Below are positions 25,963-60,364 of a stretch of DNA of 64,000 nt, in pieces (positions within the stretch are counted from its first letter, which is position 1; each line of letters opens with the position of its first letter). Made by a program: the position numbers and the translations under genes. A model generated the notes under the pieces. That model saw only the letters and a list, made by a program, of their open reading frames with translations, was not told the DNA's origin and did no database searches. Origin of the DNA: Lepidodermella squamata. Taxonomy: Eukaryota > Animalia > Gastrotricha. The DNA lies in the NCBI GenBank assembly GCA_047495785.1, contig JBLDXI010000020.1:1488001-1552000 (forward strand), read 5' to 3'.

Positions 25963-28900
25963 TCAAACACGGCCGGGTGTGAGGTGCTCGACGGTAAGGA
26001 TCCCGGCGAGAAACAGAGCCTCCTGAATTTCACGGACCATGCGAATCCGAGACAGTAGCGCGTCGAGGGTTTCCAAGTTGACAGCCTTGCTGGAGTACCA
26101 CAGCGGCGAATCAGCGACGCAGTTCGGCTCCGGGACTAGGTAGTAGGCGTCAGCCCTGCTTCGTACTGCCTCGGGACACTTGGTCAGGTAGAATTCGTAG
26201 ATTTTCAGCGGGCAGCGGAAAGTATCCGCGGTGTTTTCAACCTGCTCGAGCGCCAATTGACGATAGCCGTAACTCGCTAAAATAAAGATCGATTAAATAT
26301 AATGCTCCAATCTGATAAGATATGCTTACGATTTTTCTCCGCCGGATTCGTGTAACGAAGATACTTGAGCTTGCTACCAGTTTCAGTCTTGCGCCACTGC
26401 TGTGTTATGTGGGTGAAGGACAGTTTTGCGTGTTGCTCCGGAGTTGTCAGCAGGAAGTATTTCGTATTCAAATACAGCAGAGTATTGAGCAAACAGTAAG
26501 GGGAATGTGCGCCGAGTTGTTTCGACTCCCAAAGATGCTCCTCTTCGATACGACAGACGAGCTCGTTGGCGGGCGACAACTGCGGCTGGTACTTCGCCGT
26601 CACTTCATTCAGTGACTGCTGAAAATCGAGGAACTGTCGATCGAAGAAAATGTTCTCCGGCCGATCGTTTTCAGTCAGATAGATTTGAATGCCGAGGCAG
26701 AGGTAGTAAATGGAATCAGGATCGTACTCCTCGCCACCAGCTCGCCTGGCTTCGTGAGCAAACATAGCCAACGCCTGGTTCAGCTCCTCGTTCGAACACG
26801 CCAGGACATTTTGATTAAACAAACGCAGCTTCTTGCCACCCCTTTGCTGTTGCATTTGTTGTTGAATCGCGTTATTTTTACGATTAACCCAGTTGTTCCA
26901 GGCAGTGACACCGTACATGAATTTGAGCGTGAATTTGTCTTCGGGAATCACCTTCGTCTGAAGTTGGACGATTTGCTGCTGTTGTTGTTGTTGTTGTTGT
27001 TGTTGTTGAACAATCTGTTGCTGCTGCTGGCGAGGCAACTGAACAATTTGCTGTTGTTGCTGCTGCATTTGTTGAGGAGCCAGTTGGATTTCCATCGGGG
27101 CTTCACCGGTAGGCAACCCAACTGCTTGCATATCACTCTGTTGAAGCCAGATAACTTGAGCTTGGCCGTCCTGGCCAGCCTGACCAGTTGCAACAGCTTG
27201 TCCAGTCGTAAGGCGAAGTCTTTTGGAAGCAGTGACGTAATCGCCTTCACCGGTCGTCAAAATCGTAGCAGCCTCTTGACCATCAGGGCCGGTGTGCAAT
27301 TCAATAGCGCTACCTTCAGGTAAGTCGTTAGCCGCCATTTGAATAGCGAGAAGCATGTCCTCATTGATTTGAATCGCCTCAGCGCGACCAGATTGTTCCA
27401 CTTCCTGGATTTGATGAGTTTGTTCGACCTGCTGGACTTGAGCGTCTGTTTGCATCTGACCAGGTAGACCGTGAATTGCCACAACTGGCATCATCTGTTG
27501 ATAAGGCTCCTCGGTTTGAACAGCGGCTGTCGGCGCTTCGACGTACTGTTCAGGGCCGAGTTGCGATTCTGAGAAGACGATCGACTCGCGAATCGCACGA
27601 GCCATTTCTAGAATGTCCAGCTCAAATTTATCTGACTTGAGACACTCGTTGACCAAGGCTACGCGATTGGCAATGCGATCAGCGGTATGCAACGGGACTG
27701 GAATGAAAATAGGAACCGGGACCGGAATGGGCAACGGGCAAGGAAATGGAGTTGGAGTTGAGCTTAGCGCCAAAGGTGTTGGCACATATATTGGAACAGG
27801 AATGGGTACGACGTAGTTCTTCCTCGACCACTCTTCTTCAGTTTGTGATTCGGATTCGACCATCATCGGCCGGCAGCTTATCGCTTTCGACTGCGTGGCA
27901 GGTCTGGTCATAATCGATCGATTGCAGCGACTCACTCCGATGCCGAGGGCGGAACTGTCGGTTTCTTCGGCGAGTTGAACTTGAACTTCGCTGAACATTT
28001 GCGAATCGTTGCCATTCATGCCATCACCATCTGGAGCTTTGGATAATTGACGAGTTCGCGGGCGGTAGCTCTGCCTTTTCTTCTCCTCGACACCACCGCT
28101 GGCCAACTTCATTTGGAAGCTCGAGACACAGACGTATGAACAGAAGTTTTTCGTCTCTGTTCCGATTGTCAACTGATAAGCAGCACGAGAAAGACGTGCG
28201 CACTGCTCGCATTTAACACTTTCTCTCAAATGTAGGCATTGAATTGAACAGAGATGTCGAACTACGCCGTCCTTGTCCATCTGTTCAACCATCGACAAGT
28301 TCGGACACTCTTCTCTGCACCATTCACACCGGATCATGCGACTGACGGCGGATTTGTATCCAATCAAACATGGCGTCGAACAGAAATAATGATTGCGGCC
28401 GTTGAAGAAGAACGAGAGCGTCATTTTCTTTGCGACTAGGCCACACTGACCACAGCATTTGATTTTGATGTGATTTTCGTTGGTAAAGTCATAAAAGCAA
28501 TCTTCTCCACAAAACCGCTGCTTTTGTTGATCGAAATCGTACTCAACTTTTGGAGGACACACTTTTCTACAGACTGCGCACGCTAGCAAGCCTTTCGACA
28601 TTCGAGTGCGGTATGAAGATTCAGATTCCACATGGACATGCCTGCGATTGGATTCAGCATTGTAGCTGTTGTAGCATTCAGTGCTGCAGAACATTTTCAC
28701 GTCAGTTCGACCGCTGCTTAGAGATTGGACCTTGAGCTGGTCAGATAACGGCTCCGTAATGATAACTTCTCGCGCACAGTAGACACAGACGTTGTTATGT
28801 AGCCTGTAATCATCCATGCAGCTAAGGGAGCAGAACTGTCTCAGCAATGCTTGATAAACCAGTGAGTATCTGCCTCTGATAGTCTGTTCAACTTCTTTTC

Positions 28901-29609
28901 CACAATACCCACAGTCATTTCCTGAAACATCCAAGTTATTGAGTTATTCAAGAAATTCATGGTAAACGGAACAAACCCATATTAGAGGCCTGGTACGTCT
29001 CCAAGCACTTCTCAGAACAGAACATCAAAGACTGCCAGCAGAGCTTTGTTGTGAATTCTGTTTTCTGACAATGTGCACATTTTTCATTTGAAGAAGCAAC
29101 AGGAATTTCAGTGGAGGTTTGCTCGGCCTTCAGAAACTGTACGGGGTTTTGCCGAAATTCAGAAAAACACTCATCAGAGCAAAGGTATGAAGTTTTTCCG
29201 CTCTTTCGCTCGACATTGTATTTTGACTTTGCAACCGTTTTACAAACAACGCATGGGTTCACTTTCGATTTTTCATCCTGGGCACCATCGATTTCGGGAG
29301 CGTGCTTAGGCGTCCCATCATTAGCTACGAAGTCTGCACATCAAATAAACAACAGGTTGACGCAACAAGTAATCAATTATTTGCCTACCCTTCCCAGAAG
29401 AATCGTGTTCATGGTGATGAGGTGGAATTTGGGATCCTGAAGGGTCGACCTGGATTCAGTAAAATAGAATGATCTAATATATTTGCGTTCGGAAGCATTC
29501 TTACGTAAGAATCGTATGGTATTCCATCACCGGCTTCTGGTCGATGTTCAAAATCTTCATCTGCCTCAGTAGACAACAAATACGTCGGTGGCACTGGGTC
29601 AACTTCCAT
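25963..29609 (-). CDS. ZMYM4: ZMYM2/3/4 (woc-like) MYM-type zinc finger protein with DUF3504 domain
   Basis: Repeated CxxC...FCS(xx)C fingers, proline-rich VPIPVPIYVPTP, and C-terminal YDPDSIYYLCLGIQ...LWESKQLGAHSP..LLNTL...RCPLKIYEFYLTKCP. The paralog number cannot be resolved. Confidence 0.9.
26975..27072 (-). repeat. CAA/CAG polyglutamine tract in ZMYM
   Basis: Encodes QQMQQQQQQIVQLPRQQQQQIVQQQQQQQQQQQQIVQL. Confidence 0.9.
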
Positions 29610-46578: not shown

Positions 46579-49500
46579 ATGGCTGCTTCAAGAGAGAAGA
46601 CTCATGCTCTACATTTCTTGGACACAGACGATTCTGCCACGTTTGGCGCTGACACTCAGCCCGGAGGATACGATTTCCATGACTTCACGGTCACGTCACA
46701 GACACAGTCACAGTCACAGGTTGGGACCCAAATGTCGAGCGTACGTTTCTTTATGCTGCTTCTTTTATTTCTTTATTTACCCGTGAGGTTTTTAGAAAAT
46801 TGATCATGCTGAAAATGCCGTCGACAAAATCACTAAGGCCACCAATCAATTGCATTTTGATGACGAGGCAGAAGACTTGAACAATGAATTCAAAGAGCTG
46901 CCGAAACACGCATGCGCGTACGTTTAACTAGTTGTATTGTATACTTGCATGATTTATATTCCTGATGTTCTCAGGTATTGCGGAATTCACGATCCTGCAG
47001 CTGTTGCATATTGTCCGTCTGCGAAAAGATGGTTTTGCAATGGGCGTGGAAACACTTCGGGCAGCCATATTATTCACCATTTAGTTCGAGCGAAAGCGAA
47101 GGAGGTAACTCTGCACAAAGAAGGACCTATGGGAGAAACAACACTCGAGTGCTACAACTGCGGTTGTCGCAACGTATTTGTCCTTGGATTTGTACCTGCG
47201 AAGGCCGAGTCTGTCGTTGTGCTTCTATGTCGTACGCCTTGCGCTCAACAAGCAACTGTGAAAGATATTGAATGGGACTCTGCTCTCTGGCAGCCTCTTA
47301 TTCAAGATCGAGAGTTCGTTCCTTGGCTGGTAAAAGTTCCATCTGCTGCTGATCAGTCCCGAGCTCGGCAGATCACAGCTCAACAGATCGCAAAGCTTGA
47401 AGAGCTTTGGAATTATAAACCCGAAGCTCAGGTTGAAGATCTTGAAAAACCAGGCGTGGATGAAGATGTCCAACAAGTTCTGTTGCGCTACCAAGATGGC
47501 TATCAATACCAATCAATTTTTGCTGCATTGGTTCACCTTGAAGCTGAATATGATCGTCAAGTTAAAGAAGCCCTGACGCAAGACAACGTGCAAGTTCGCT
47601 GGGATATCGGCCTCAACAAAAAACGCACCGCTTACTTTAAACTGACGAAATTCAGTGATGAAATGAAGCTGATGCAGGGCGATGAGCTTCGTTTACGCGA
47701 GCCTAAGCGTAAATGGTTTGGCATCGGTAATGTTATCAAGGTCGCAGACAACAAGACCGATGAGGTTGCTATCGAACTGAAAAGCAACGTTGGGGTTCCG
47801 ATCGACTGCAATAACTTGAGCGTTGATTTTGTTTGGAAAAGCACGACTTTTGACCGAATGACCAATGCTTTGAAAACGTTCGCCATGGACGAAAATTGCG
47901 TGTCCACTTACGTCTACCACAAATTGCTAGGTCACGAGGTTGATGACTACTCCCTCCGAACCCAACCGCCTAAACGCTTTTCAGCACCTAACTTGCCAGA
48001 ATTGAATCATTCCCAAGTTTATGCCGTGAAAACAGTTTTGCAGAGACCTTTGTCGCTCATTCAGGGTCCTCCAGGTACGGGCAAAACAGTCACTGCTGCT
48101 ACGATTGTTTACCAGCTTGTCAAGTCGACGAATGGACAGGTGCTCGTTTGTGCTCCGTCAAATATTGCTGTCGATCAGCTGACTGAAAAGATTCACCGCA
48201 CTGGCTTGAAAGTCGTTCGCCTATGCGCGAAAAGCAGAGAAGCTATCGACTCGCCTGTCTCGTTCTTAGCCCTGCATAATCAGTTGCGTAACTTGACCGC
48301 TAACTCAGAACTGCAAAAGTTGATCCAGCTTAAAGAGGAAGCTGGCGAGTTGTCAGCCTCTGACGAACAGGCATTCATCTCTTTGAAGCGTATTGCGGAG
48401 CGAGAACTTCTGGCAAATGCTGATGTTATCTGCTGCACATGCGTTGGAGCTGGGGACCCACGTTTGGGTAGTAACAAGCTGAAAATTCGCTCTGTTCTGA
48501 TCGACGAGTGCACCCAAGCAACTGAACCTGAGTGTATGATTCCAATCGTTAGTGGCGCGAAACAACTTATATTGGTCGGTGATCATTGTCAGCTTGGCCC
48601 TGTCGTCATGTGTAAAAAGGCTGCGAAAGCTGGTCTCTGCCAGTCGCTTTTCGAGCGCTTAGTCGTATTGGGTATTCGACCTATTCGTCTCCAAGTGCAA
48701 TACCGTATGCATCCAGCGCTGTCACAATTCCCATCCAACATCTTTTACGAGGGTACTCTTCAAAACGGAGTTACTGCGGGCGATCGAATTAAGCCTGGAT
48801 TGGACTTCCCTTGGCCTAATATGGATAAGCCCATGTTTTTCTACGCCGTTATGGGCACGGAGGAAATCGCAGGTTCTGGAACTTCGTATTTGAACCGAAC
48901 CGAAGCGGCAACTGTTGAAAAATTGACGACTCATCTGCTGAAGGGGGGCATAAAACCCGATCAGATCGGTGTTATCACCCCATATGAAGGCCAAAGAGCT
49001 TTCATTGTTCAATATATGCAACACAGTGGCTCGCTCAACGCCCGGCTGTACCAGGAAATTGAGGTCGCAAGCGTCGACGCTTTTCAAGGTCGTGAGAAGG
49101 ATTACATCATCATGACGTGCGTTCGTAGCAATGAGCACCACCAAATCGGGTTTTTGTCCGACCCTCGACGTCTCAACGTTGCTATCACCCGAGCTCGTTA
49201 CGGCCTTGTTATCGTGGGAAATCCGAAAGTTTTGTCAAAGCAGCCGCTCTGGAACCATCTGCTGACCTTTTACAAGGAGAACCGATTGCTGGTCGAAGGC
49301 CCCCTCACTAGTTTGAAAGAAAGCCAGGTCCAGTTTGCGAAGTTGCAGAAATTGGTTAACCCGATCAACCCTGGTGCGAAATTCATGTCGACGACCACTT
49401 ACGATGCCAGGCAGTACTACGCTACGGTTCAATCGCAACACGGCCCACCTGGGGCGTCTCAGAACAACGGCCCGATGTCGCAGAACTTCGGCTCTGGTTA

Positions 49501-50129
49501 CAACGGACCAATCAGCCAGGGCTACGGAAACACGCCCCAATACAGCGGTGCTGGTATGGCAGCCCCGCCTCCTTACCCTGGCGCTGGGTCTGCCGCTCGT
49601 CTTCACGACCCAATGACCTTCATTGATCCGATGATGGCCAACTACAACTTCCAGTTGCCCCTGGGACTGTTTTACCCGATGGTTCCACCTCAAAACTCCG
49701 GTGAGAGTTTGTACTTTCTAGTGAGTTTGTTGATTATTCATGTTTTATTAAGGTGGTATGCGCCCTGGGCCTCCTGGCCAGACTGCTCCCTATGGCAACT
49801 TCTCCAATGGCCCGATGCGACGAATGCCGATGGCCCCAGCTCCATCCCGTGGAAATCCGATGAAAGCACCCCAAGGTCGACAGGGTGGCCCGCTGAGCCA
49901 AGAGCCGATCAGCCAAACCAACTACGCCTCGTTGTCGGGCCCATCTGGCATTGACTCGCAGCCGAACCAGCGCAACCACACGGACCAGACGATGTCCCAG
50001 AGCGGCCCTGGTTTTTCGCAGGACGTTGTCTACGGCAGTGCGGCGTCTGGAAACCGCGGCGACATGATGCTGTCGCAGGACTCGCGCGCTGCGCTATCGC
50101 AAGGCGGCGGCTATTTGAGCCAGTACTGA
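46579..50129 (+). CDS. UPF1: Nonsense-mediated decay helicase UPF1 (SMG-2)
   Basis: CH domain ([23 protein letters not shown]), [24 protein letters not shown] and an SQ-rich tail ending LSQY. Exons 46579-46740, 46796-46917, 46975-49700 and 49753-50129. Confidence 0.98.
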
Positions 50130-52583: not shown

Positions 52584-53277
52584 TTTGCAAAGCTGAGTTT
52601 ACGATGATTCCACTCTCTCTGTTATAAAATACTGCAAAATCACGCGCTACATTTTTTGTATCAGTTCGAAGGCAATCTACCTATCTGTTTGTCACTCGGT
52701 GTTTTCCGGTCTGGTTTTTGTTGTTGTTCTGTCTCGTGCGTCTGAAATTCTTCTTTAGTCGGGGGCCGAATTCAGGCCGTCCTTTCCTCTTTCAGCGTCT
52801 AGCTCGTTCGCTTTTGTGGTCTACGGATGCGCTGGATTGAATATTTATTTTTTATTACTACAATTACCATCGCGACAGCCACTGAATCCTTCCCTTCTCG
52901 GCGGTTCTAACAACTATCTGTTTATTATTGAGGCGGAAGATTGATAAGCCAGGAAATCATAATTCACGAAATTGATGTTTTCAAAAAGTGCTTGCATTTT
53001 TATTTGTGTACTATGTGGCGCAGAATCGAGATGCTTTTTACTGATCGGACAACAAGAAAAATATTATGATCAACTAAATATATAAATGACAAAATTTGGC
53101 CAACATAATTCGTAATATTCAGGGAAATATTATGGATTTATATATATTCAGTATTTTGTTGCACGAAATTCCGCTAAAATGTCTAGAAACGATTGATGAC
53201 GATAAAAATAATAAAAATACATGGCTTATAATTGCTGCGGTTTTTTTCAAAATTTGAGGTATTGTTGCATTCGATTT

Positions 53278-55686
53278 TCAGCGGCCCATCACTGAGACGC
53301 CATCGTCCATGCCCTCCGGATTGGGTGGAGGCTTCTCGAGGCCGAAAGCGGCAGTCATGACAGTTGTAGCCTCGGCACTGCGGAGCCAGTAGGTCTTCAT
53401 CTCGCCCTTTCCTTTGACGGGCACTTTCCCGCGATATTCCAGGTTGAACCCGCCGTACTTGCGCAACATATTACACGTCCTTTCACTGCAGTGGACGTGA
53501 AGAGCTGAACAAAACATCTTAAAAATAAGCGATTTATTAGCAAAAATATAACATACGTTTCGAAGTAGATTCCATGCGAGAAGCTGTGTTGACAGTGTCG
53601 CCGAATAGACAGTAGCGCGGCATTACAAGGCCCACGACTCCGGCGAAAACAGGTCCCGAATTGAGGCCAACACGAATGCGAACGAAGCCATCGCCCATCG
53701 GAATTTGCTTTGCGGTCTCAATCATGTCCAGCGCCATCAGGGCGACAGCGGCAGCGTGGTCAGTTCGCCGCTTCGGCACACCGCCAACAACCATGTAAGT
53801 ATCGCTAACTGTCTCAACCTTGTAGCAACCATAAAGCTCGATACGCTCGTCGAGGGAGCGGTACAGGTTGTTGAGCAGTGTCACAATTTTCGACGGCTCA
53901 GATGTTGACACAAAATCCTAGAGAACTACATGAAGTCGAATTCAAAATTAAGGTGGAATGGCTTACATGGAATCCGTAAACGTCGTTGAAATAAACAGTC
54001 GCTTCCTCGAAGAATTCAGGGGCGATAGTGCCGCCTTCTTTTAACATCCTAGCTACGGCCATGGGTAACATTTGGTATAGTAAGCTGTCCGCCTCTTCGG
54101 TTTTCCCCTTTCAAAAGAGTTAATGAAGGCTTTCGATTACAACTGATAGAAATTCTTACCCTGAGTTGGTCGGTGCGGTCGCGAATTTCCAAGAACACTT
54201 GGTTGATTCTGAAGATCGCATAAGCGACCAGAGCGCAAGCAATGGTAGTCAGGATTGTTATCACAATATCTGAAATATTCGAATAAAGCGATTCGGCGCA
54301 ATTTTGCCGATAAAACTTACCGACAACAATCAGTTGCTGCTGATCAGTTGAAGTTCGAGAAAACGATGCCAAGTCGTCCGCGAAGACCTCCGTTATTGGC
54401 GCTACCTTTGCCTCCCATTCGTAGAAGCTCTTATTGACAGCATCAAAGTTTTTAGGCCTGGTTGAAATTCCAAGATAAAAAATTTACAAGCGAAAATAAG
54501 ATATTTACAGGAGGCCAACGGCAGCATCGAAAACTTTCTGCTGTGATCGGCAAATTTGACAATCGCGATTTGAGACTGGTTCGATGGGTTTTGTCGTATC
54601 GGCGTACTTTAGCGCCATTTCGAGATAGTTTCGCGACAAAACTGGGCCCCGCTCAGACATCCTGGTAGCTTCCAGGACCACGCGGGTAGCTCCAACTATG
54701 AAATTTCGAATTTTGGGGTAAAGTTTGGAAACGGGACTTTATAACTTACGGACGTCGGTTCGATCCCGGTAGACGCCTGCAGTGACAATTGTTCGAACCT
54801 TGTCCACTTCAAAGCGAGATAGCGACAGAAACAGAAAGGACGCTGCCTCGGCCCAAAACGGGCCGACATTCAAATCGCGAAGTGAGAACGAAACAGAATT
54901 GAGAAACTGCTGCAGGATTCCAGTGTAATAGGCCATCTCAGCAGATGCTGTAAAAGAATTCGTTTATAAAAACCTTGGCTGGGACAATGGAACTAGAAAC
55001 TTGCTTGCATTAACGCTTTTTTTCACGTTGCTTCGGTGTCCATCGACCTCTACCGTATAAAGTCGACTATTCTTGGTGTAGTCGGCGAACTCCGGACTGT
55101 CCTGGATAGGCCACATCGGCAGCAGATTCACAACCTGATAAGAAGCTTCCGAGACTGACTGCCAGGCTTGCTCGAGTTGGGCTGCTACTTGGTCAGTAGT
55201 GGCAAGTAAGAATTGGATAACGGCATATCGCTCCTTCGAAACAATGCCCGTCAATGTTTGCGTTGTTTTAATTCGTTTGATTTCATCCTATTTAATTACC
55301 AATAGCTTATTTGTAAAATATTCAAGGAGTTACAACTTACTGACACATCTTCCATAACTTCTCTGGCAACACGACCACTTTCAGCCATCATGCCAAGCTG
55401 AATGTAGACAATGAACATGGCAACAGCAACGATAAAGGCGAGGTAGAGAATCTAAAAAATATTGCGAATGTGCAACATGTCCCAATCAAATAAATCTTTT
55501 TACCTGAGTGACTCGACCACGTTTAAGGTACAGATCAGGAGCGAAAAAGAACTGAACGATATGCTTGGCTGAGTTAACCGGAACCGCGAATTCAGATGCG
55601 TAAACTGACTTGGCGAAGCTGTAACTCATTTGCGAGCCTGAACGCAGGCTCATCGTCCAAGTCCTTCCGTCATCAACGGTCGCCAT
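53278..55686 (-). CDS. Two-TM guanylyl cyclase with NIT-like extracellular domain and no kinase-homology domain, paralog A
   Basis: TM1 [22 protein letters not shown], ectodomain, TM2 [26 protein letters not shown] coiled-coil region, cyclase YFNDVYGF...[11 protein letters not shown]...[18 protein letters not shown]. Confidence 0.9.
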
Positions 55687-56279
55687 TTTCAAGGCGCTCG
55701 GTCACAAAAAAAATATATAGCGTCTCAAACGCACTTCTTCACTTCAGGTATACGTATGCTCTTAAAAAGGCTGAATGCCGAAATGAAGAAATGACACAAT
55801 TAAGGTGTTTTCCAAACGGCGGCTGCCTGGCCGGTTGACTCATCCATAGCGCACCAAGGCAATTGTAAAATAATTAATTTTCCCCGGAGGATTATTCATG
55901 CTGTATACGCACGGCGAACTCGTACCGTCATAACAGCGGTGATCGGCTTATTAGAGAGGGGAACAAGGCATCGACGGACTGCGTCGAAAAAACCTGTCTT
56001 CAATATGTCGACTTGAGTAGCAATCATCCTAATCGTTCAGCCTATAGTTATGATTTCTCTGCTAATGTGTCTTGCGTGAAAGGAATATATAAGTATAATT
56101 CGAAAGCAAAACAGCACAGACTAAAACATTTATTTTGTAAGAAATCGAACAAAAAGTGAAGACAGTTTTTAATCGTAAATGAGGCTATATTAAGAGAATG
56201 CGAATCACAAAATCATTGAATAACAAAAAAATAATTTCACAGTGCGCGGTTATTCAATCTTCGAAATTTGAAATTGTGT

Positions 56280-58795
56280 TTATTCCTGGGTATCGGTGTT
56301 GAAGATTCGGGACTCATTCATCGCTCGCTTTTTTACGCCGAACAACGCAGTCGTTAGAGTTGTCGGCTCGGCACCTCGCAACCAATAAGTTTTCATATCG
56401 CCCTTTCCTTTCACTGGAACTGTGCCACGAAATTCGCAGTGAAAACCGCCGTGATGTGATAAAATGTTGTACGTCTTCTCTGAAATTTGAATGTGAAGAG
56501 CTTTCGAGGTGGATTCCATACGTGAGGCTGTGTTGACTGTATCACCGAAAAGGCAGTAGCGCGGCATGATCAGGCCAACAACCCCGGCAAAAACGGGCCC
56601 TGAATGAATCCCGACGCGAATTCGAACCTGAGAAGAGCCCATCCGAACAGTTTTTGCCGTCTCCATGAGGTCGAGCGCCATCAAAGCAATAGCAGCTGCA
56701 TGATCAGATCTTCGATTGGGAACGCCACTAACCACCATGTAGCTAAAGAAAAATCGATTAAGCCCATGATTTTAAAGTAAAAAAATTCAAAATTACGTAT
56801 CGCTGACAGTCTCGACTTTATAACAGCCGTAGAGTTCAATTCGCCGATCCAACAAGGAGTAAAGGGAATTCAGCAAAGTCACGATTTTCGACGGCTCCGA
56901 ATGAGCCACAAATTCCTGCAAAACTTCTTGCTCAAGTTCGCAACAGAAAATCATTCAAAATAAAACCTGAAAGCCGGTTACATCGTTGAAGTAGACAGTT
57001 GCCTCGTCGAAAAATTCTGGCATGATTTTAGCCCCCTCTTTCAGCTTTTTGGCAACAGCGATCGGCAGCATTTGATACAGCAAAGCATCAGACTCCTCGG
57101 TTCGATCCGCCAATCGCTCCGTATGAACTCTCAATTCAAGGAATCCTTTCATGATTTGCTAATACATTTATCCTTGAGGGATGAGGATTTTATGTAATTA
57201 AACGCAAAAATACCCATAAAATCACTCCGGTTGCTGTGCAGGCGATTGTCGAGATGACTGTTATCACCACATCTATTGAAAACGTGAATTATTCGAATAA
57301 AGTATATAATGTAGTCATTCGCTACCCTTACCAAGGTTGATTAAGCCAGCCACGGTAGTACGTTCGTATGCGACCCCATTGAGGACATCAGTCATCTGAA
57401 CTTGTGCTACAAATGCCTTGGCGTCCCATTCGTAAAAGCTTTTGTTGGCAGCGTCCGGTTGTGAATTTCTTATTTCAGAAATTTTGAAATAACTTGAAAT
57501 CATGATTTTTACTTTACTTACATTAGAAGTTGGGCTCTGAGAGCTTTGTTTTGAGCATTACACAATTGGCATTCCCTGCTCGAGGCGTCTTCTATCGGCA
57601 TAATCGCACTGGAAAAATCGAGAGCCCATTGCAGGGATTTCGTAGCCAATGTAGTTGAACGGGTCATCAGCTTATCGGCATCAAAATAAACTCGTTCGGC
57701 ACCAGCTTATTATTGGAAAAATTGCCTTAATTTGAATGGAATCAAAGTCATATGCCGAACCTATTTGAGGGCCTTGAACGACGTTGCAGTTGGTGCAGTT
57801 GGTTCTGTTAGAGTTGTCTACGTTCAAAGTTCCAACTGGAGCAAGGGTACGCACTCGGTCTACTTCGTTACGAGCCCCGGACAGGAAAAGATAGGCTACT
57901 AGCAATCTCCAATATTCTCCAACATTGATCGCACGGTAATTGGCAGTTATGGCGACAAAAAACTCATCTACCACCCCCGAGTAGTAGTTGAATTCCGGTA
58001 TCGCTTTTATATCAAATGGTTTGAAATTTGATATAAACATAAATTTTAAGGACCTACTTGAGTTAAGGTTGCGTTTAACGTTAGCGCGGTGCGTTTCAAG
58101 CTCGATCGTGAACAATTTTCCACTGGTGACGTATTCCTGTGACTCGCCTGTGCTTCCATCGATCGGCCAATCGGTTATTGCGCTGATCTATTGTCGCAAA
58201 AAAATTAGCAGAAATAACAAATTTTTGCAGCCGACCTGCTGAAACGTCGTATCGTATATGCTTTGCCACATGGTTTCCCATCTTGAGGCTGCAGCATCGG
58301 TTGTCGCTGACATGAACTGAACGACGGCGTAGCGTTGTCTAGCGATGGCGCCGATAAGCCCCTCTATTTGGCTTATGTCTTGCATTTTATTCTGTTAAGA
58401 ATTCGAAAAGTTTTTCGGCTCTAATCTGAAAACGTCAATTTCTTACCAAAGACCGATCTGCTAAATCGTTCGTCTTTATCTCAGACTGAGCCATCATGCC
58501 TAGTTGTATCAGAACGATCAACAGTGCTGTTAGGCAGACGCATGTCAAAAATATGATCTGCCAAAATGTAAATAAATCGGCTGTTGAAATGGCTAAAACG
58601 TTTACTTCAAGCTACCTGTGTTGCCCTGCCGCGCTTCAGGTACAAATCAGCGGCGAAAATGAATCTGAAGAATTTACCGGCCGAATTCGGCACGATTCCG
58701 CCTTCTGAAGACCAAACTGAAATGTCATCCCACAAACTGGTGGTATGGCTTCGACCGTCCATCGACGTGAAGCGAGACCCTAGAGACGAAGCCAT
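56280..58795 (-). CDS. Two-TM guanylyl cyclase with NIT-like extracellular domain, paralog B
   Basis: Same architecture as paralog A and a shared [10 protein letters not shown] juxtamembrane motif. [15 protein letters not shown] and [18 protein letters not shown] are present. Confidence 0.9.
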
Positions 58796-59060
58796 TTTTC
58801 CACTGAATTTCCTTTTGTGAAAATAAGCAAAACTGCAGAGCGCACCTGCAAGTTATTTGCATCTCTCGTCTAATTGCGATTTTAATATTCGAAATAATCT
58901 CTCATTAACACTCATTATCACCGGAAAATCCCCAATAGCCGAAAAGCCTGCTTAATCAGTGTATCAGTTAATTTATTCTCTTGCACTTGATACAACACAC
59001 ATTATAAAAGGAGCAATTTCCAATATAAAAACACAGTATAGAATGCAAGGTGCGTTTGAC

Positions 59061-59851
59061 TTAGACGTATAAAGAGCCATCTGCAGGACCGAGATAGCCG
59101 ATGGCTATTAATATCGCATCAACAACTGTCCAAACACCAAGACCACCAAAGCTGAACAATTTGCCAAGTCCTTCTTTCCACCAGCCAAGGTAGAAGCGAT
59201 CGGCTCCGAAGCCACCAAGAAAGACACTGTTGAAAATTGAACAATTTAGCAATAGATAAGATAATATTGTTTAACCAACCTTAATAAGAAAGCTGTGAGC
59301 CAAGAGTAGCCGGAGCACCAATTACACCGCACTTTCTTGCGAAAAACGCGGGGGCCTGAAGGAATAAGTTTAATCCATTACCAATTACCCAAGTTTGATC
59401 AAATAGGCTTACCCATGCAATTTTGATTAGATGGGACAGTGCATGATGTCTCTATCAACGAACCAGACCGGCAATAAACTGGGGCAACGCATAGGTGTTG
59501 AGAAGACGGCACTTGGTAACAGAATTGGCAAGTCATCGATCGAGTGAAATTGGCCTTTTCAAGCTGAGAGTTTGGCCCTTTGCATTCGATCAGCGATCGG
59601 CAAGAAACAGAGACGTCGCTGTCGCCATAATTACACTCGGCGGAGAAGCAGAAGACGCAATATGGGGGTAAGGAAGAACAAGTTGTCCCTCGATACTGCT
59701 CACATGATGCCGTCAAATTTCGATTGCTGCCATATTCAAAGCCTGAAGTACAGAAATATATGAAAATACATCTGAGAACTAATGCATTCAACATACTAGA
59801 AGAGGCGCTCGAGTAGGTGATACAAACGGCAAACAGCAGAAGTATCAGCAT
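59061..59851 (-). CDS. TM2D3: TM2 domain-containing protein 3 (almondex-like)
   Basis: Signal peptide, Cys-rich ectodomain (CQFCYQ) and [31 protein letters not shown]...[11 protein letters not shown]. Confidence 0.9.
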
Positions 59852-59934: not shown

Positions 59935-60364
59935 TCAATCTCTCCATTGATGGCTGCAATTCACGTTACAGCATTTATAAAAAGTAGTCATAGGCTCATC
60001 GGCAGATCTGGTTTGAATTTGCATGAAATATGCTCTTCCTTGGCCACATTTAGGACATTGAACTGAAAATAGTCCTAAATTAATACAAATATTCTTTCTT
60101 TGAAAATAAATACCCTCTGTGCTATCGACGTTATCCCAAGAACCAGTTCCACCCAAAATGTCGCCCACGTCTTTCTTCTTGACAAAGGTTCTTTTAACTA
60201 TCTGTAAAAGGGAAAAGCTATATGATGTGATGTCATGCATGTATTAAGCAATAAACCTGTTCAGTTATGTTGTTGACATATGGGCATGTGCTGCATGCAA
60301 AACGGAGGCATTCGGGCCCTTCCCCGATAACTAAAGAGTTTCCGCAAACTGGGCAAAATATCAT
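59935..60364 (-). CDS. POLR3K: RNA polymerase III subunit RPC10/C11
   Basis: MIFCPVCGNSL...FACSTCPY...SWDNVDST...CPKC..RAYFMQIQTRSADEPMTTFYKC, across three exons. Confidence 0.96.

Follow-up and report, generated by a model that had tools for sequence, protein, structure and literature searches.

Two adjacent genes, A and B, lie on the reverse strand of the 64-kb stretch of DNA analyzed here (64,000 nucleotides of contig JBLDXI010000020.1, hereafter the window) and encode guanylyl cyclases (GCs) that are very likely divergent members of the animal NIT-GC family, that is, two-pass, presumably dimeric receptor cyclases with an ectodomain derived from the nitrate/nitrite-sensing (NIT) domain. 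The initial annotation of the two genes was borne out overall, in that they are adjacent and kinase-less, and it overstated their novelty. NIT-GCs of exactly such architecture, with the NIT domain flanked by 2 transmembrane (TM) segments and a cyclase at the C-terminus, are on record from most animal phyla (Moroz et al. 2020, PMC7400543; Jokura et al., bioRxiv 10.1101/2023.08.02.551600). Platynereis has NIT-GC1 and NIT-GC2, and for NIT-GC1 a nitric oxide (NO) donor raises cyclic GMP (cGMP) only with the NIT domain present (Jokura et al., bioRxiv 10.1101/2023.08.02.551600). The A/B pair thus opens no new receptor category, this receptor type being already known from many invertebrates.

We identified the same order of parts in both proteins: about 60 cytoplasmic residues that end in the basic juxtamembrane motif F[FI]FA[PA]DLYLKRGR, TM1, an ectodomain, TM2, a 32-residue signaling helix, and a class III cyclase. 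Hydropathy identified exactly 2 TM segments per protein, flanking an ectodomain of 283 residues (A) or 293 residues (B) with N-x-S/T sequons. In exon-wise searches, the cyclase exons were matched by Pfam Guanylate_cyc (PF00211, E 1e-40 to 2e-44) and the linker exon by the last 20 positions only of Pfam HNOBA; no other Pfam domain was found on the exons of A and B, and neither the ANF-receptor (PF01094) nor the kinase-homology domain (PF07714) was matched on any of them. The TM2, linker, and cyclase exons of A are joined directly in RNA, with about 30 residues between TM2 and the cyclase, and because of these joins a kinase-homology or H-NOX module is excluded, not merely undetected. With 2 TM segments, a short linker carrying only the HNOBA tail, and PF00211, the kinase-less two-TM architecture is upheld, as is the statement that A and B are neither receptor-type nor soluble GCs. 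The 2 proteins are 50% identical overall; their cyclases (77%) are more alike than their ectodomains (about 34%).

A and B share with NIT-GCs the series of TM1, a probable NIT-type ectodomain, TM2, a short HNOBA-like linker ending in LLYQMLP, and a GC-type cyclase, with no kinase-homology domain, as well as the basic juxtamembrane motif before TM1 and an occurrence in tandem, lineage-specific expansions. NPR1/GC-A resembles them in the cyclase motifs of B and in the signaling helix before the cyclase, but, unlike A and B, it combines a single TM segment with an ANF-receptor ectodomain and a kinase-homology domain. Soluble (H-NOX) GCs have an N-terminal H-NOX domain, a full HNOBA domain, complementary alpha and beta catalytic halves, and no TM segment, whereas A and B have 2 TM segments, only the tail of HNOBA, and the full catalytic set in 1 chain. 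The gcy receptor GCs of C. elegans are chemoreceptors used for ions and odors, with lineage-specific expansion, fast-evolving ectodomains, and an often tandem arrangement; they differ from A and B in having an ANF-receptor ectodomain, a single TM segment, and a kinase-homology domain.

Orthologues of both genes were identified in a second species, where a fragment match (P0234) led to the ENA metagenome contig L004, from the same sample as a UPF1 sequence 89% identical to the UPF1 of the window. The pair on L004, Lb followed by La, keeps the B-then-A order, with Lb 72% identical to B and La 63% identical to A. Nonsynonymous divergence (dN) between the window genes and these orthologues was 0.32–0.43 in the ectodomain and 0.07–0.11 in the cyclase, so that the sensor evolves 3 to 4 times faster than the enzyme; dN was compared without a dN/dS ratio because synonymous sites are saturated (proportion of synonymous differences, pS, about 0.8). 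It follows that the duplication is old and that purifying selection acts on both copies. Intron counts differ between the 2 species (4 in Lb and 10 in B; 8 in La and 9 in A), which implies rapid intron turnover between species with saturated synonymous divergence. The L004 pair is flanked by CAP and RabGAP-TBC genes, unlike the pair in the window.

Ectodomain homology and family placement

As a yardstick we used the NIT-GCs P0173, P0187 (gastropod Babylonia), P0163 (starfish Patiria), P0184, P0241, and P0266, in all of which Pfam detects NIT (PF08376), the E values lying between 1.9e-25 (P0173) and 3.6e-4, with 3.8e-15 for P0187. No window sequence went into a local hidden Markov model (HMM) of 5 NIT-GC ectodomains, against which the B ectodomain scored 38.6 bits (E 4e-8, scaled to a nominal 1 million targets), the A ectodomain 22.4 bits (E 0.004), and the best of 2000 shuffled ectodomains 13 bits. 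In profile comparison with hhalign, A plus B matched 9 NIT-GC ectodomains with a probability of 95.7% (E 1e-8, 163 columns), or 95.9% (E 5e-9, 175 columns) with the orthologues added, and 30 column shuffles gave at most 1.5%. From TM1 to LLYQMLP, A and B are collinear with NIT-GCs (hhalign 99.2%, E 2e-18). MAFFT, unaided, placed the window exons on the LQxER helix, WP, HR, N-x-S/T sequon, and (Y/F)Y(S/T) of NIT-GCs, and likewise aligned them with W..VAY and then with the KE..G.ERALG helix, so that the ectodomain likeness to NIT-GCs takes in the ER helix, WP, HR, the sequon, YS/YY, and W..VAY. The ESM atlas ranked NIT first among families for A exon 3 (45 of 60 matches, score 0.90), which we take as a lead only; exon 5 of B and exon 5 of A gave no usable match. 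Word-based protein searches brought back nothing beyond near relatives of the queries, whether started from an NIT-GC ectodomain or from a mixed alignment.

We found the link to the bacterial NIT fold through the family. A profile of NIT-GC ectodomains and window exons matched NasR of Klebsiella oxytoca (PDB 4AKK; PF08376) with E 4.4e-4, its only long match outside linkers, and also matched linker helices of soluble GC beta-1 and of NPR1. An AlphaFold2 model of the ectodomain of NIT-GC P0173 (predicted local distance difference test, pLDDT, 87; predicted template-modeling score, pTM, 0.81) had NasR 4AKK as its sole significant fold match (E 6e-6, template-modeling score 0.66); this fold evidence comes from the homologue, and sequence alignment served to place A and B on it. 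The HMMER alignment set KERYAV (A) and RQRYAV (B) on LQCERGAS of NasR and EVD(K/R)VRT on AGQERALG, the helix with E175/R176, the predicted nitrate-pocket residues (PMC7496416). The helix-1 and helix-5 ER positions therefore align with NasR, and neither of the predicted pocket arginines (118 and 244 in A, 117 and 244 in B) varies among A, B, La, and Lb. In length and predicted all-helical make-up, the A/B ectodomains are compatible with the double four-helix bundle of NasR; the differences are that the link is transitive, from the window to the NIT-GC profile and from there to NasR, that the pocket Glu is lost in A and B, and that NasR has its NIT domain in the cytoplasm, linked to an RNA-binding ANTAR output. 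The motifs quoted in the initial annotation (KVET, RYCLFG, KERYAV/RQRYAV, YYTG/YYSG, and EVDKVRT/EVDRVRT) are all present, those of the ectodomain stand in NIT order by alignment to Pfam-positive NIT-GCs and to NasR, and the arginines at the helix-1 and helix-5 positions aligned to NasR are kept in both paralogues.

Several results weigh against a place for A and B in the NIT-GC family. Pfam NIT matched none of the individual ectodomain exons with a cutoff as loose as E 10, phmmer of exon 3 of A against PDB gave no match, pairwise phmmer of the ectodomains against 150 cyclase relatives gave nothing significant, and the membrane-proximal stretch of about 90 residues had no detectable similarity to NIT-GCs when the last third was aligned by itself with hhalign. 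The NIT-consensus Glu of helix 5 is Val in all 4 sequences, and the Glu of helix 1 is Gln in B. In the cyclase tree, A, B, and the orthologues formed a clade (support 100/100) on a long stem (0.84) that was not grouped with NIT-GCs but joined weakly (88/83) to 2 soluble GCs, and a clade of NIT-GCs plus the window proteins cost 8.2 log-likelihood units (approximately unbiased test, p 0.26, not rejected). The join to soluble GCs is probably a long-branch effect. By the cyclase domain, quick and careful trees alike neither nest A and B among ordinary receptor GCs nor speak against such a nesting, and membership in the NIT-GCs is argued from ectodomain and architecture because the cyclase tree is uninformative. 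In comparison with NIT-GCs, the differences of A and B are thus ectodomain exons too diverged for Pfam NIT, an unmatched last third, the change of the helix-5 Glu to Val, and a long-branched cyclase that reads VSDTYM instead of IGDAYM.

These results could be read as the mark of an unrelated or convergent helical-bundle sensor whose likeness to NIT stems from composition and chance motifs, as the missing single-exon and pairwise matches, the 2 of 3 empty ESM-atlas queries, and the unmatched last third would suggest. We consider this very improbable, since the profile scores lie far above those of the shuffled controls, the collinearity with NIT-GCs takes in everything between the juxtamembrane motif and the linker, and the N-glycosylation sequon and the WP, HR, and YY positions coincide with those of NIT-GCs. 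Derivation from an ordinary GC with ANF-receptor and kinase-homology domains, both lost secondarily, would accommodate the poorly resolved tree and a cyclase that is equally close to NIT-GCs and to kinase-homology receptor GCs (up to 65%). Its probability appears next to negligible, given 2 TM segments with the sensor between them, the absence of any trace of either domain in Pfam searches, and an ectodomain that matches those of NIT-GCs.

A and B are therefore treated here as NIT-GCs, and the description of their ectodomain as divergent and NIT-like stands for the first two thirds or so, which are homologous to NIT-GC ectodomains, but not for the last third, which is unrecognizable. That third holds the clade-specific motifs R[DE]CQ[IL]C and NKSFY[ED]W. 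The former, a CxxC motif invariant in A, B, La, and Lb and outside the part matched to NIT-GCs, could be a disulfide or metal site. The initial annotation had also singled out a Cys-containing insert, NRTNCTNCN, in B. This region is an N-glycosylation-rich loop that is present in the B model and adjoins the uncertain intron 5 (57760-57691), and the orthologue Lb has NETNVTLNGNET there, without conserved cysteines, which gives no support to a meaningful Cys insert.

Catalytic set, dimerization and candidate ligands

The catalytic set was invariant in A, B, and the orthologues and comprises both metal Asp residues (one of them, in A, in FNDVYGF), the Glu of KVET, the Arg of VRIRVG, the Cys of RYCLFG, Asn, and Arg. 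The GTP-specificity residues were present in both proteins as claimed, namely E in KVET and C in RYCLFG. Among solved structures, the B cyclase came closest to NPR1/GC-A (PDB 9bcv and others, E 1e-38), which has the same catalytic and GTP-specificity motifs. No close orthologue of the B cyclase exon was found among the 1.84 billion representatives searched, and its best single-domain matches, 55–65% identical, were a mixture of kinase-homology receptor GCs and NIT-plus-cyclase proteins.

Because each chain carries all catalytic residues, homodimers would suffice, and judging from these residues either protein is expected to work by itself as an active, GTP-specific homodimer. An obligate A/B heterodimer, put forward initially as a possibility, would fit the adjacent, same-strand genes, the B-then-A order kept in the second species despite saturated synonymous divergence, the transcription of both genes in 1 RNA sample (X2), and the His-to-Asn change that A-type proteins share in the RVGxHSG motif. 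In these proteins (53650-53683, reverse strand, in A; also La), Asn replaces the His that B-type proteins and other GCs have in RVG(I/L)H(S/T)GP. Obligate heterodimeric cyclases are marked by complementary loss of catalytic residues. We found no such loss in A and B, each chain having both metal Asp, Glu, Cys, Asn, and Arg, and tandem retention is equally expected of subfunctionalized paralogues; with both subunits catalytically complete nothing forces their pairing, and an obligate heterodimer is unlikely.

The retention of both arginines favors a small anion as the ligand class of A and B, and on this sequence evidence nitrate, nitrite, or an NO-derived species is plausible. A shift to ligands other than nitrogen oxides is a serious rival. 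Under it, A and B would share the same descent, but their ectodomains would now sense other ligands, as lineage-specific, fast-diversifying chemosensory cyclases on an NIT-derived scaffold. We take this reading seriously because the sensor evolves fast, as the ectodomain and cyclase dN values and the low identity of the paralogue ectodomains (34%) attest, and it would also account for the loss of the NIT helix-5 Glu and for a last third that is unrecognizable and has conserved CxxC and NKSFYxW motifs of its own. Against it stand the invariance of both predicted pocket arginines in all 4 sequences, the loss of the helix-5 Arg in several Pfam-positive NIT-GCs of the comparison set, unlike A and B, and the response of the only tested animal NIT-GC to an NO donor via its NIT domain (bioRxiv 10.1101/2023.08.02.551600). 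On balance we lean away from a change of ligand class, while holding it a real possibility.

Gene models, transcription and genomic setting

The models of A and B were built by hand from three-frame translations and GT/GC-AG splice signals and have introns of 48–70 nt; feature coordinates are collected in Table 1. The outer limits given in the initial annotation were exact, 58795 being the first base of the B ATG and 53278 the last base of the A stop codon. A third copy was not found in the window by tblastn with both proteins.

RNA evidence came from spliced contigs of the public run X2 (presumed RNA), 95–100% identical to the window. All 9 junctions of A were supported by these contigs: junctions 1, 2, 4, 7, 8, and 9 appeared as CT..AC joints at the predicted bases, and junctions 3, 5, and 6 as loose contig ends whose letters continue into the next exon. 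Junction 3 has a GC donor, and the loose ends at 55005 and 55098 link ...GTTAATGCAA to CATCTGCTGAG, proving the GC-AG intron 3 of A. The protein across this intron reads ...SVNATSAEMAYY..., and a GT-only model would mis-splice it and alter 4 residues. In B, junction 3 (58236/58187) was visible as a joint in X2 contigs, the start of exon 6 agreed with the orthologue Lb, in which a YFDADK stretch is coding, and intron 5 was the only uncertain junction.

X2 contigs over 53200-58900 also contained many joints between opposite strands (for example, 54901/55063 and 55133/55248), which look like assembly fold-back artifacts. DNA contigs of run X1 over 56520-58700, which spans B with its introns, had 17 differing letters in 1.1 kb as well as small indels, and A was identical; the differences over B suggest a divergent haplotype or strain.

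Table 1. Positions of the A and B genes, their parts and other mapped features (window coordinates unless a contig is named)
Feature	Position	Strand	Detail and basis
Gene A	53278-55686	-	645 aa, 10 exons; hand model and RNA contigs
Gene A exons	55686-55504, 55451-55341, 55287-55005, 54947-54750, 54695-54509, 54457-54321, 54269-54160, 54107-53967, 53917-53557, 53504-53278	-	
A GC-AG intron 3	54948-55004	-	donor gcaagt, acceptor ttttacag; RNA loose ends and sequence
A juxtamembrane motif	55513-55551	-	aligns with ADPVTSRGK of NIT-GCs
A TM1	55386-55451	-	aa 62-83; hydropathy
A ectodomain	54322-55385	-	aa 84-366, introns included; local HMM, hhalign, alignments to NIT-GCs and NasR
A KER helix 1	55210-55245	-	Arg118
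A WP	55105-55116	-	
A HR..NVK and NAT sequon	54946-55038	-	
A YY	54904-54936	-	
A helix 5, EVDKVRT	54790-54858	-	Arg244
A RDCQIC	54550-54570	-	
A NKSFYEW	54406-54435	-	
A TM2	54211-54321	-	aa 367-386, spans intron 6; hydropathy
A signaling-helix linker	54063-54210	-	aa 387-418, ends in LLYQMLP; HNOBA tail, RNA exon joins
A cyclase	53380-54062	-	aa 419-612; PF00211, orthologue alignment
Gene B	56280-58795	-	652 aa, 11 exons; hand model
Gene B exons	58795-58616, 58557-58447, 58391-58236, 58187-58058, 58003-57761, 57690-57522, 57468-57332, 57272-57214, 57158-56967, 56915-56797, 56742-56280	-	
B juxtamembrane motif	58625-58663	-	alignment to NIT-GCs
B TM1	58492-58557	-	aa 61-82; hydropathy
B ectodomain	57333-58491	-	aa 83-375, introns included; local HMM, hhalign, alignments
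B RQR helix 1	58314-58349	-	Arg117
B WP	58161-58172	-	
B HR..NVK and NST sequon	58002-58091	-	
B YY	57960-57992	-	
B helix 5, EVDRVRT	57846-57914	-	Arg244
B N-glycosylation-rich loop	57762-57824	-	
B RECQLC	57560-57580	-	
B NKSFYEW	57417-57446	-	
B TM2	57214-57332	-	aa 376-395, spans intron 7; hydropathy
B linker	57063-57158	-	
B cyclase	56376-57062	-	PF00211 E 1.8e-44, complete GC catalytic set
UPF1	46937-49954	+	single 1005-aa open frame
Tandem pair Lb then La	L004:1581-6523	+	same B-then-A order as the window

The initial annotation had spoken of a nematode-like animal, and the UPF1 gene of the window places the host elsewhere. Its closest orthologues were those of molluscs, brachiopods, lamprey, and cnidarians (73–75%), with no nematode among the best 120 matches, and a relative 89% identical was identified in the ENA metagenomes ERZ23486787, ERZ23486764, and ERZ27333047. 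In the UPF1 tree, in which the expected phyla were recovered, the host fell inside the spiralian group (SH-like approximate likelihood-ratio test, SH-aLRT, 91) beside the flatworm Macrostomum and apart from ecdysozoans, a join that we flag as a possible long-branch artifact and as evidence from a single gene. The nematode SL1 sequence was absent from the 64 kb, as were Rfam families. Taken together, the sequence points to a small-intron spiralian.

Upstream of B, at 59061-59252 and 59935-60364 (reverse strand), open reading frame translations revealed exons that belong to a TM2-domain-like protein and to a small RNA polymerase subunit with a TFIIS-type zinc ribbon. Further, an 885-aa open frame at 26277-28934 (reverse strand) carries MYM-type zinc finger, QRICH1, and DUF3504 matches in Pfam and is either animal-type or transposon-derived.

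Predicted mechanism and meaning of the pair

Unlike the gene structure, transcription, and homology of A and B, their dimerization, direction of signaling, and ligand are features that we infer. The glycosylated, all-helical, NIT-derived ectodomain would face outward, with the short N-terminus in the cytoplasm, and the receptor would act as a dimer in which the cyclase domains of both chains form the active sites, as in other receptor GCs. A ligand would be taken up in a pocket bounded by the Arg244 helix and the helix that bears Arg118 in A and Arg117 in B, and occupancy of this pocket would shift TM2 and the signaling helix and so change cGMP synthesis.

A more far-reaching reading, which we regard as a long shot, is that A and B are the catalytically complete members of a large, lineage-specific radiation of NIT-derived cyclases in a spiralian meiofaunal animal and serve as shared partners for "half-site" or catalytically dead paralogues. 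If this were true, the divergent partner would set ligand specificity and A or B would supply catalysis; to our knowledge, such co-receptor logic has not been described for guanylyl cyclase receptors.

We know of no animal candidates other than NIT-GCs for direct sensing of nitrate or nitrite or for NO sensing without haem, and of functional data for 1 of them only, Platynereis NIT-GC1. As probable divergent members of this family, A and B show how far the sensor can drift while the 2 presumed pocket arginines and a fully competent cyclase stay fixed, and together with La and Lb they form a natural set of 4 sequences for finding the positions that matter.

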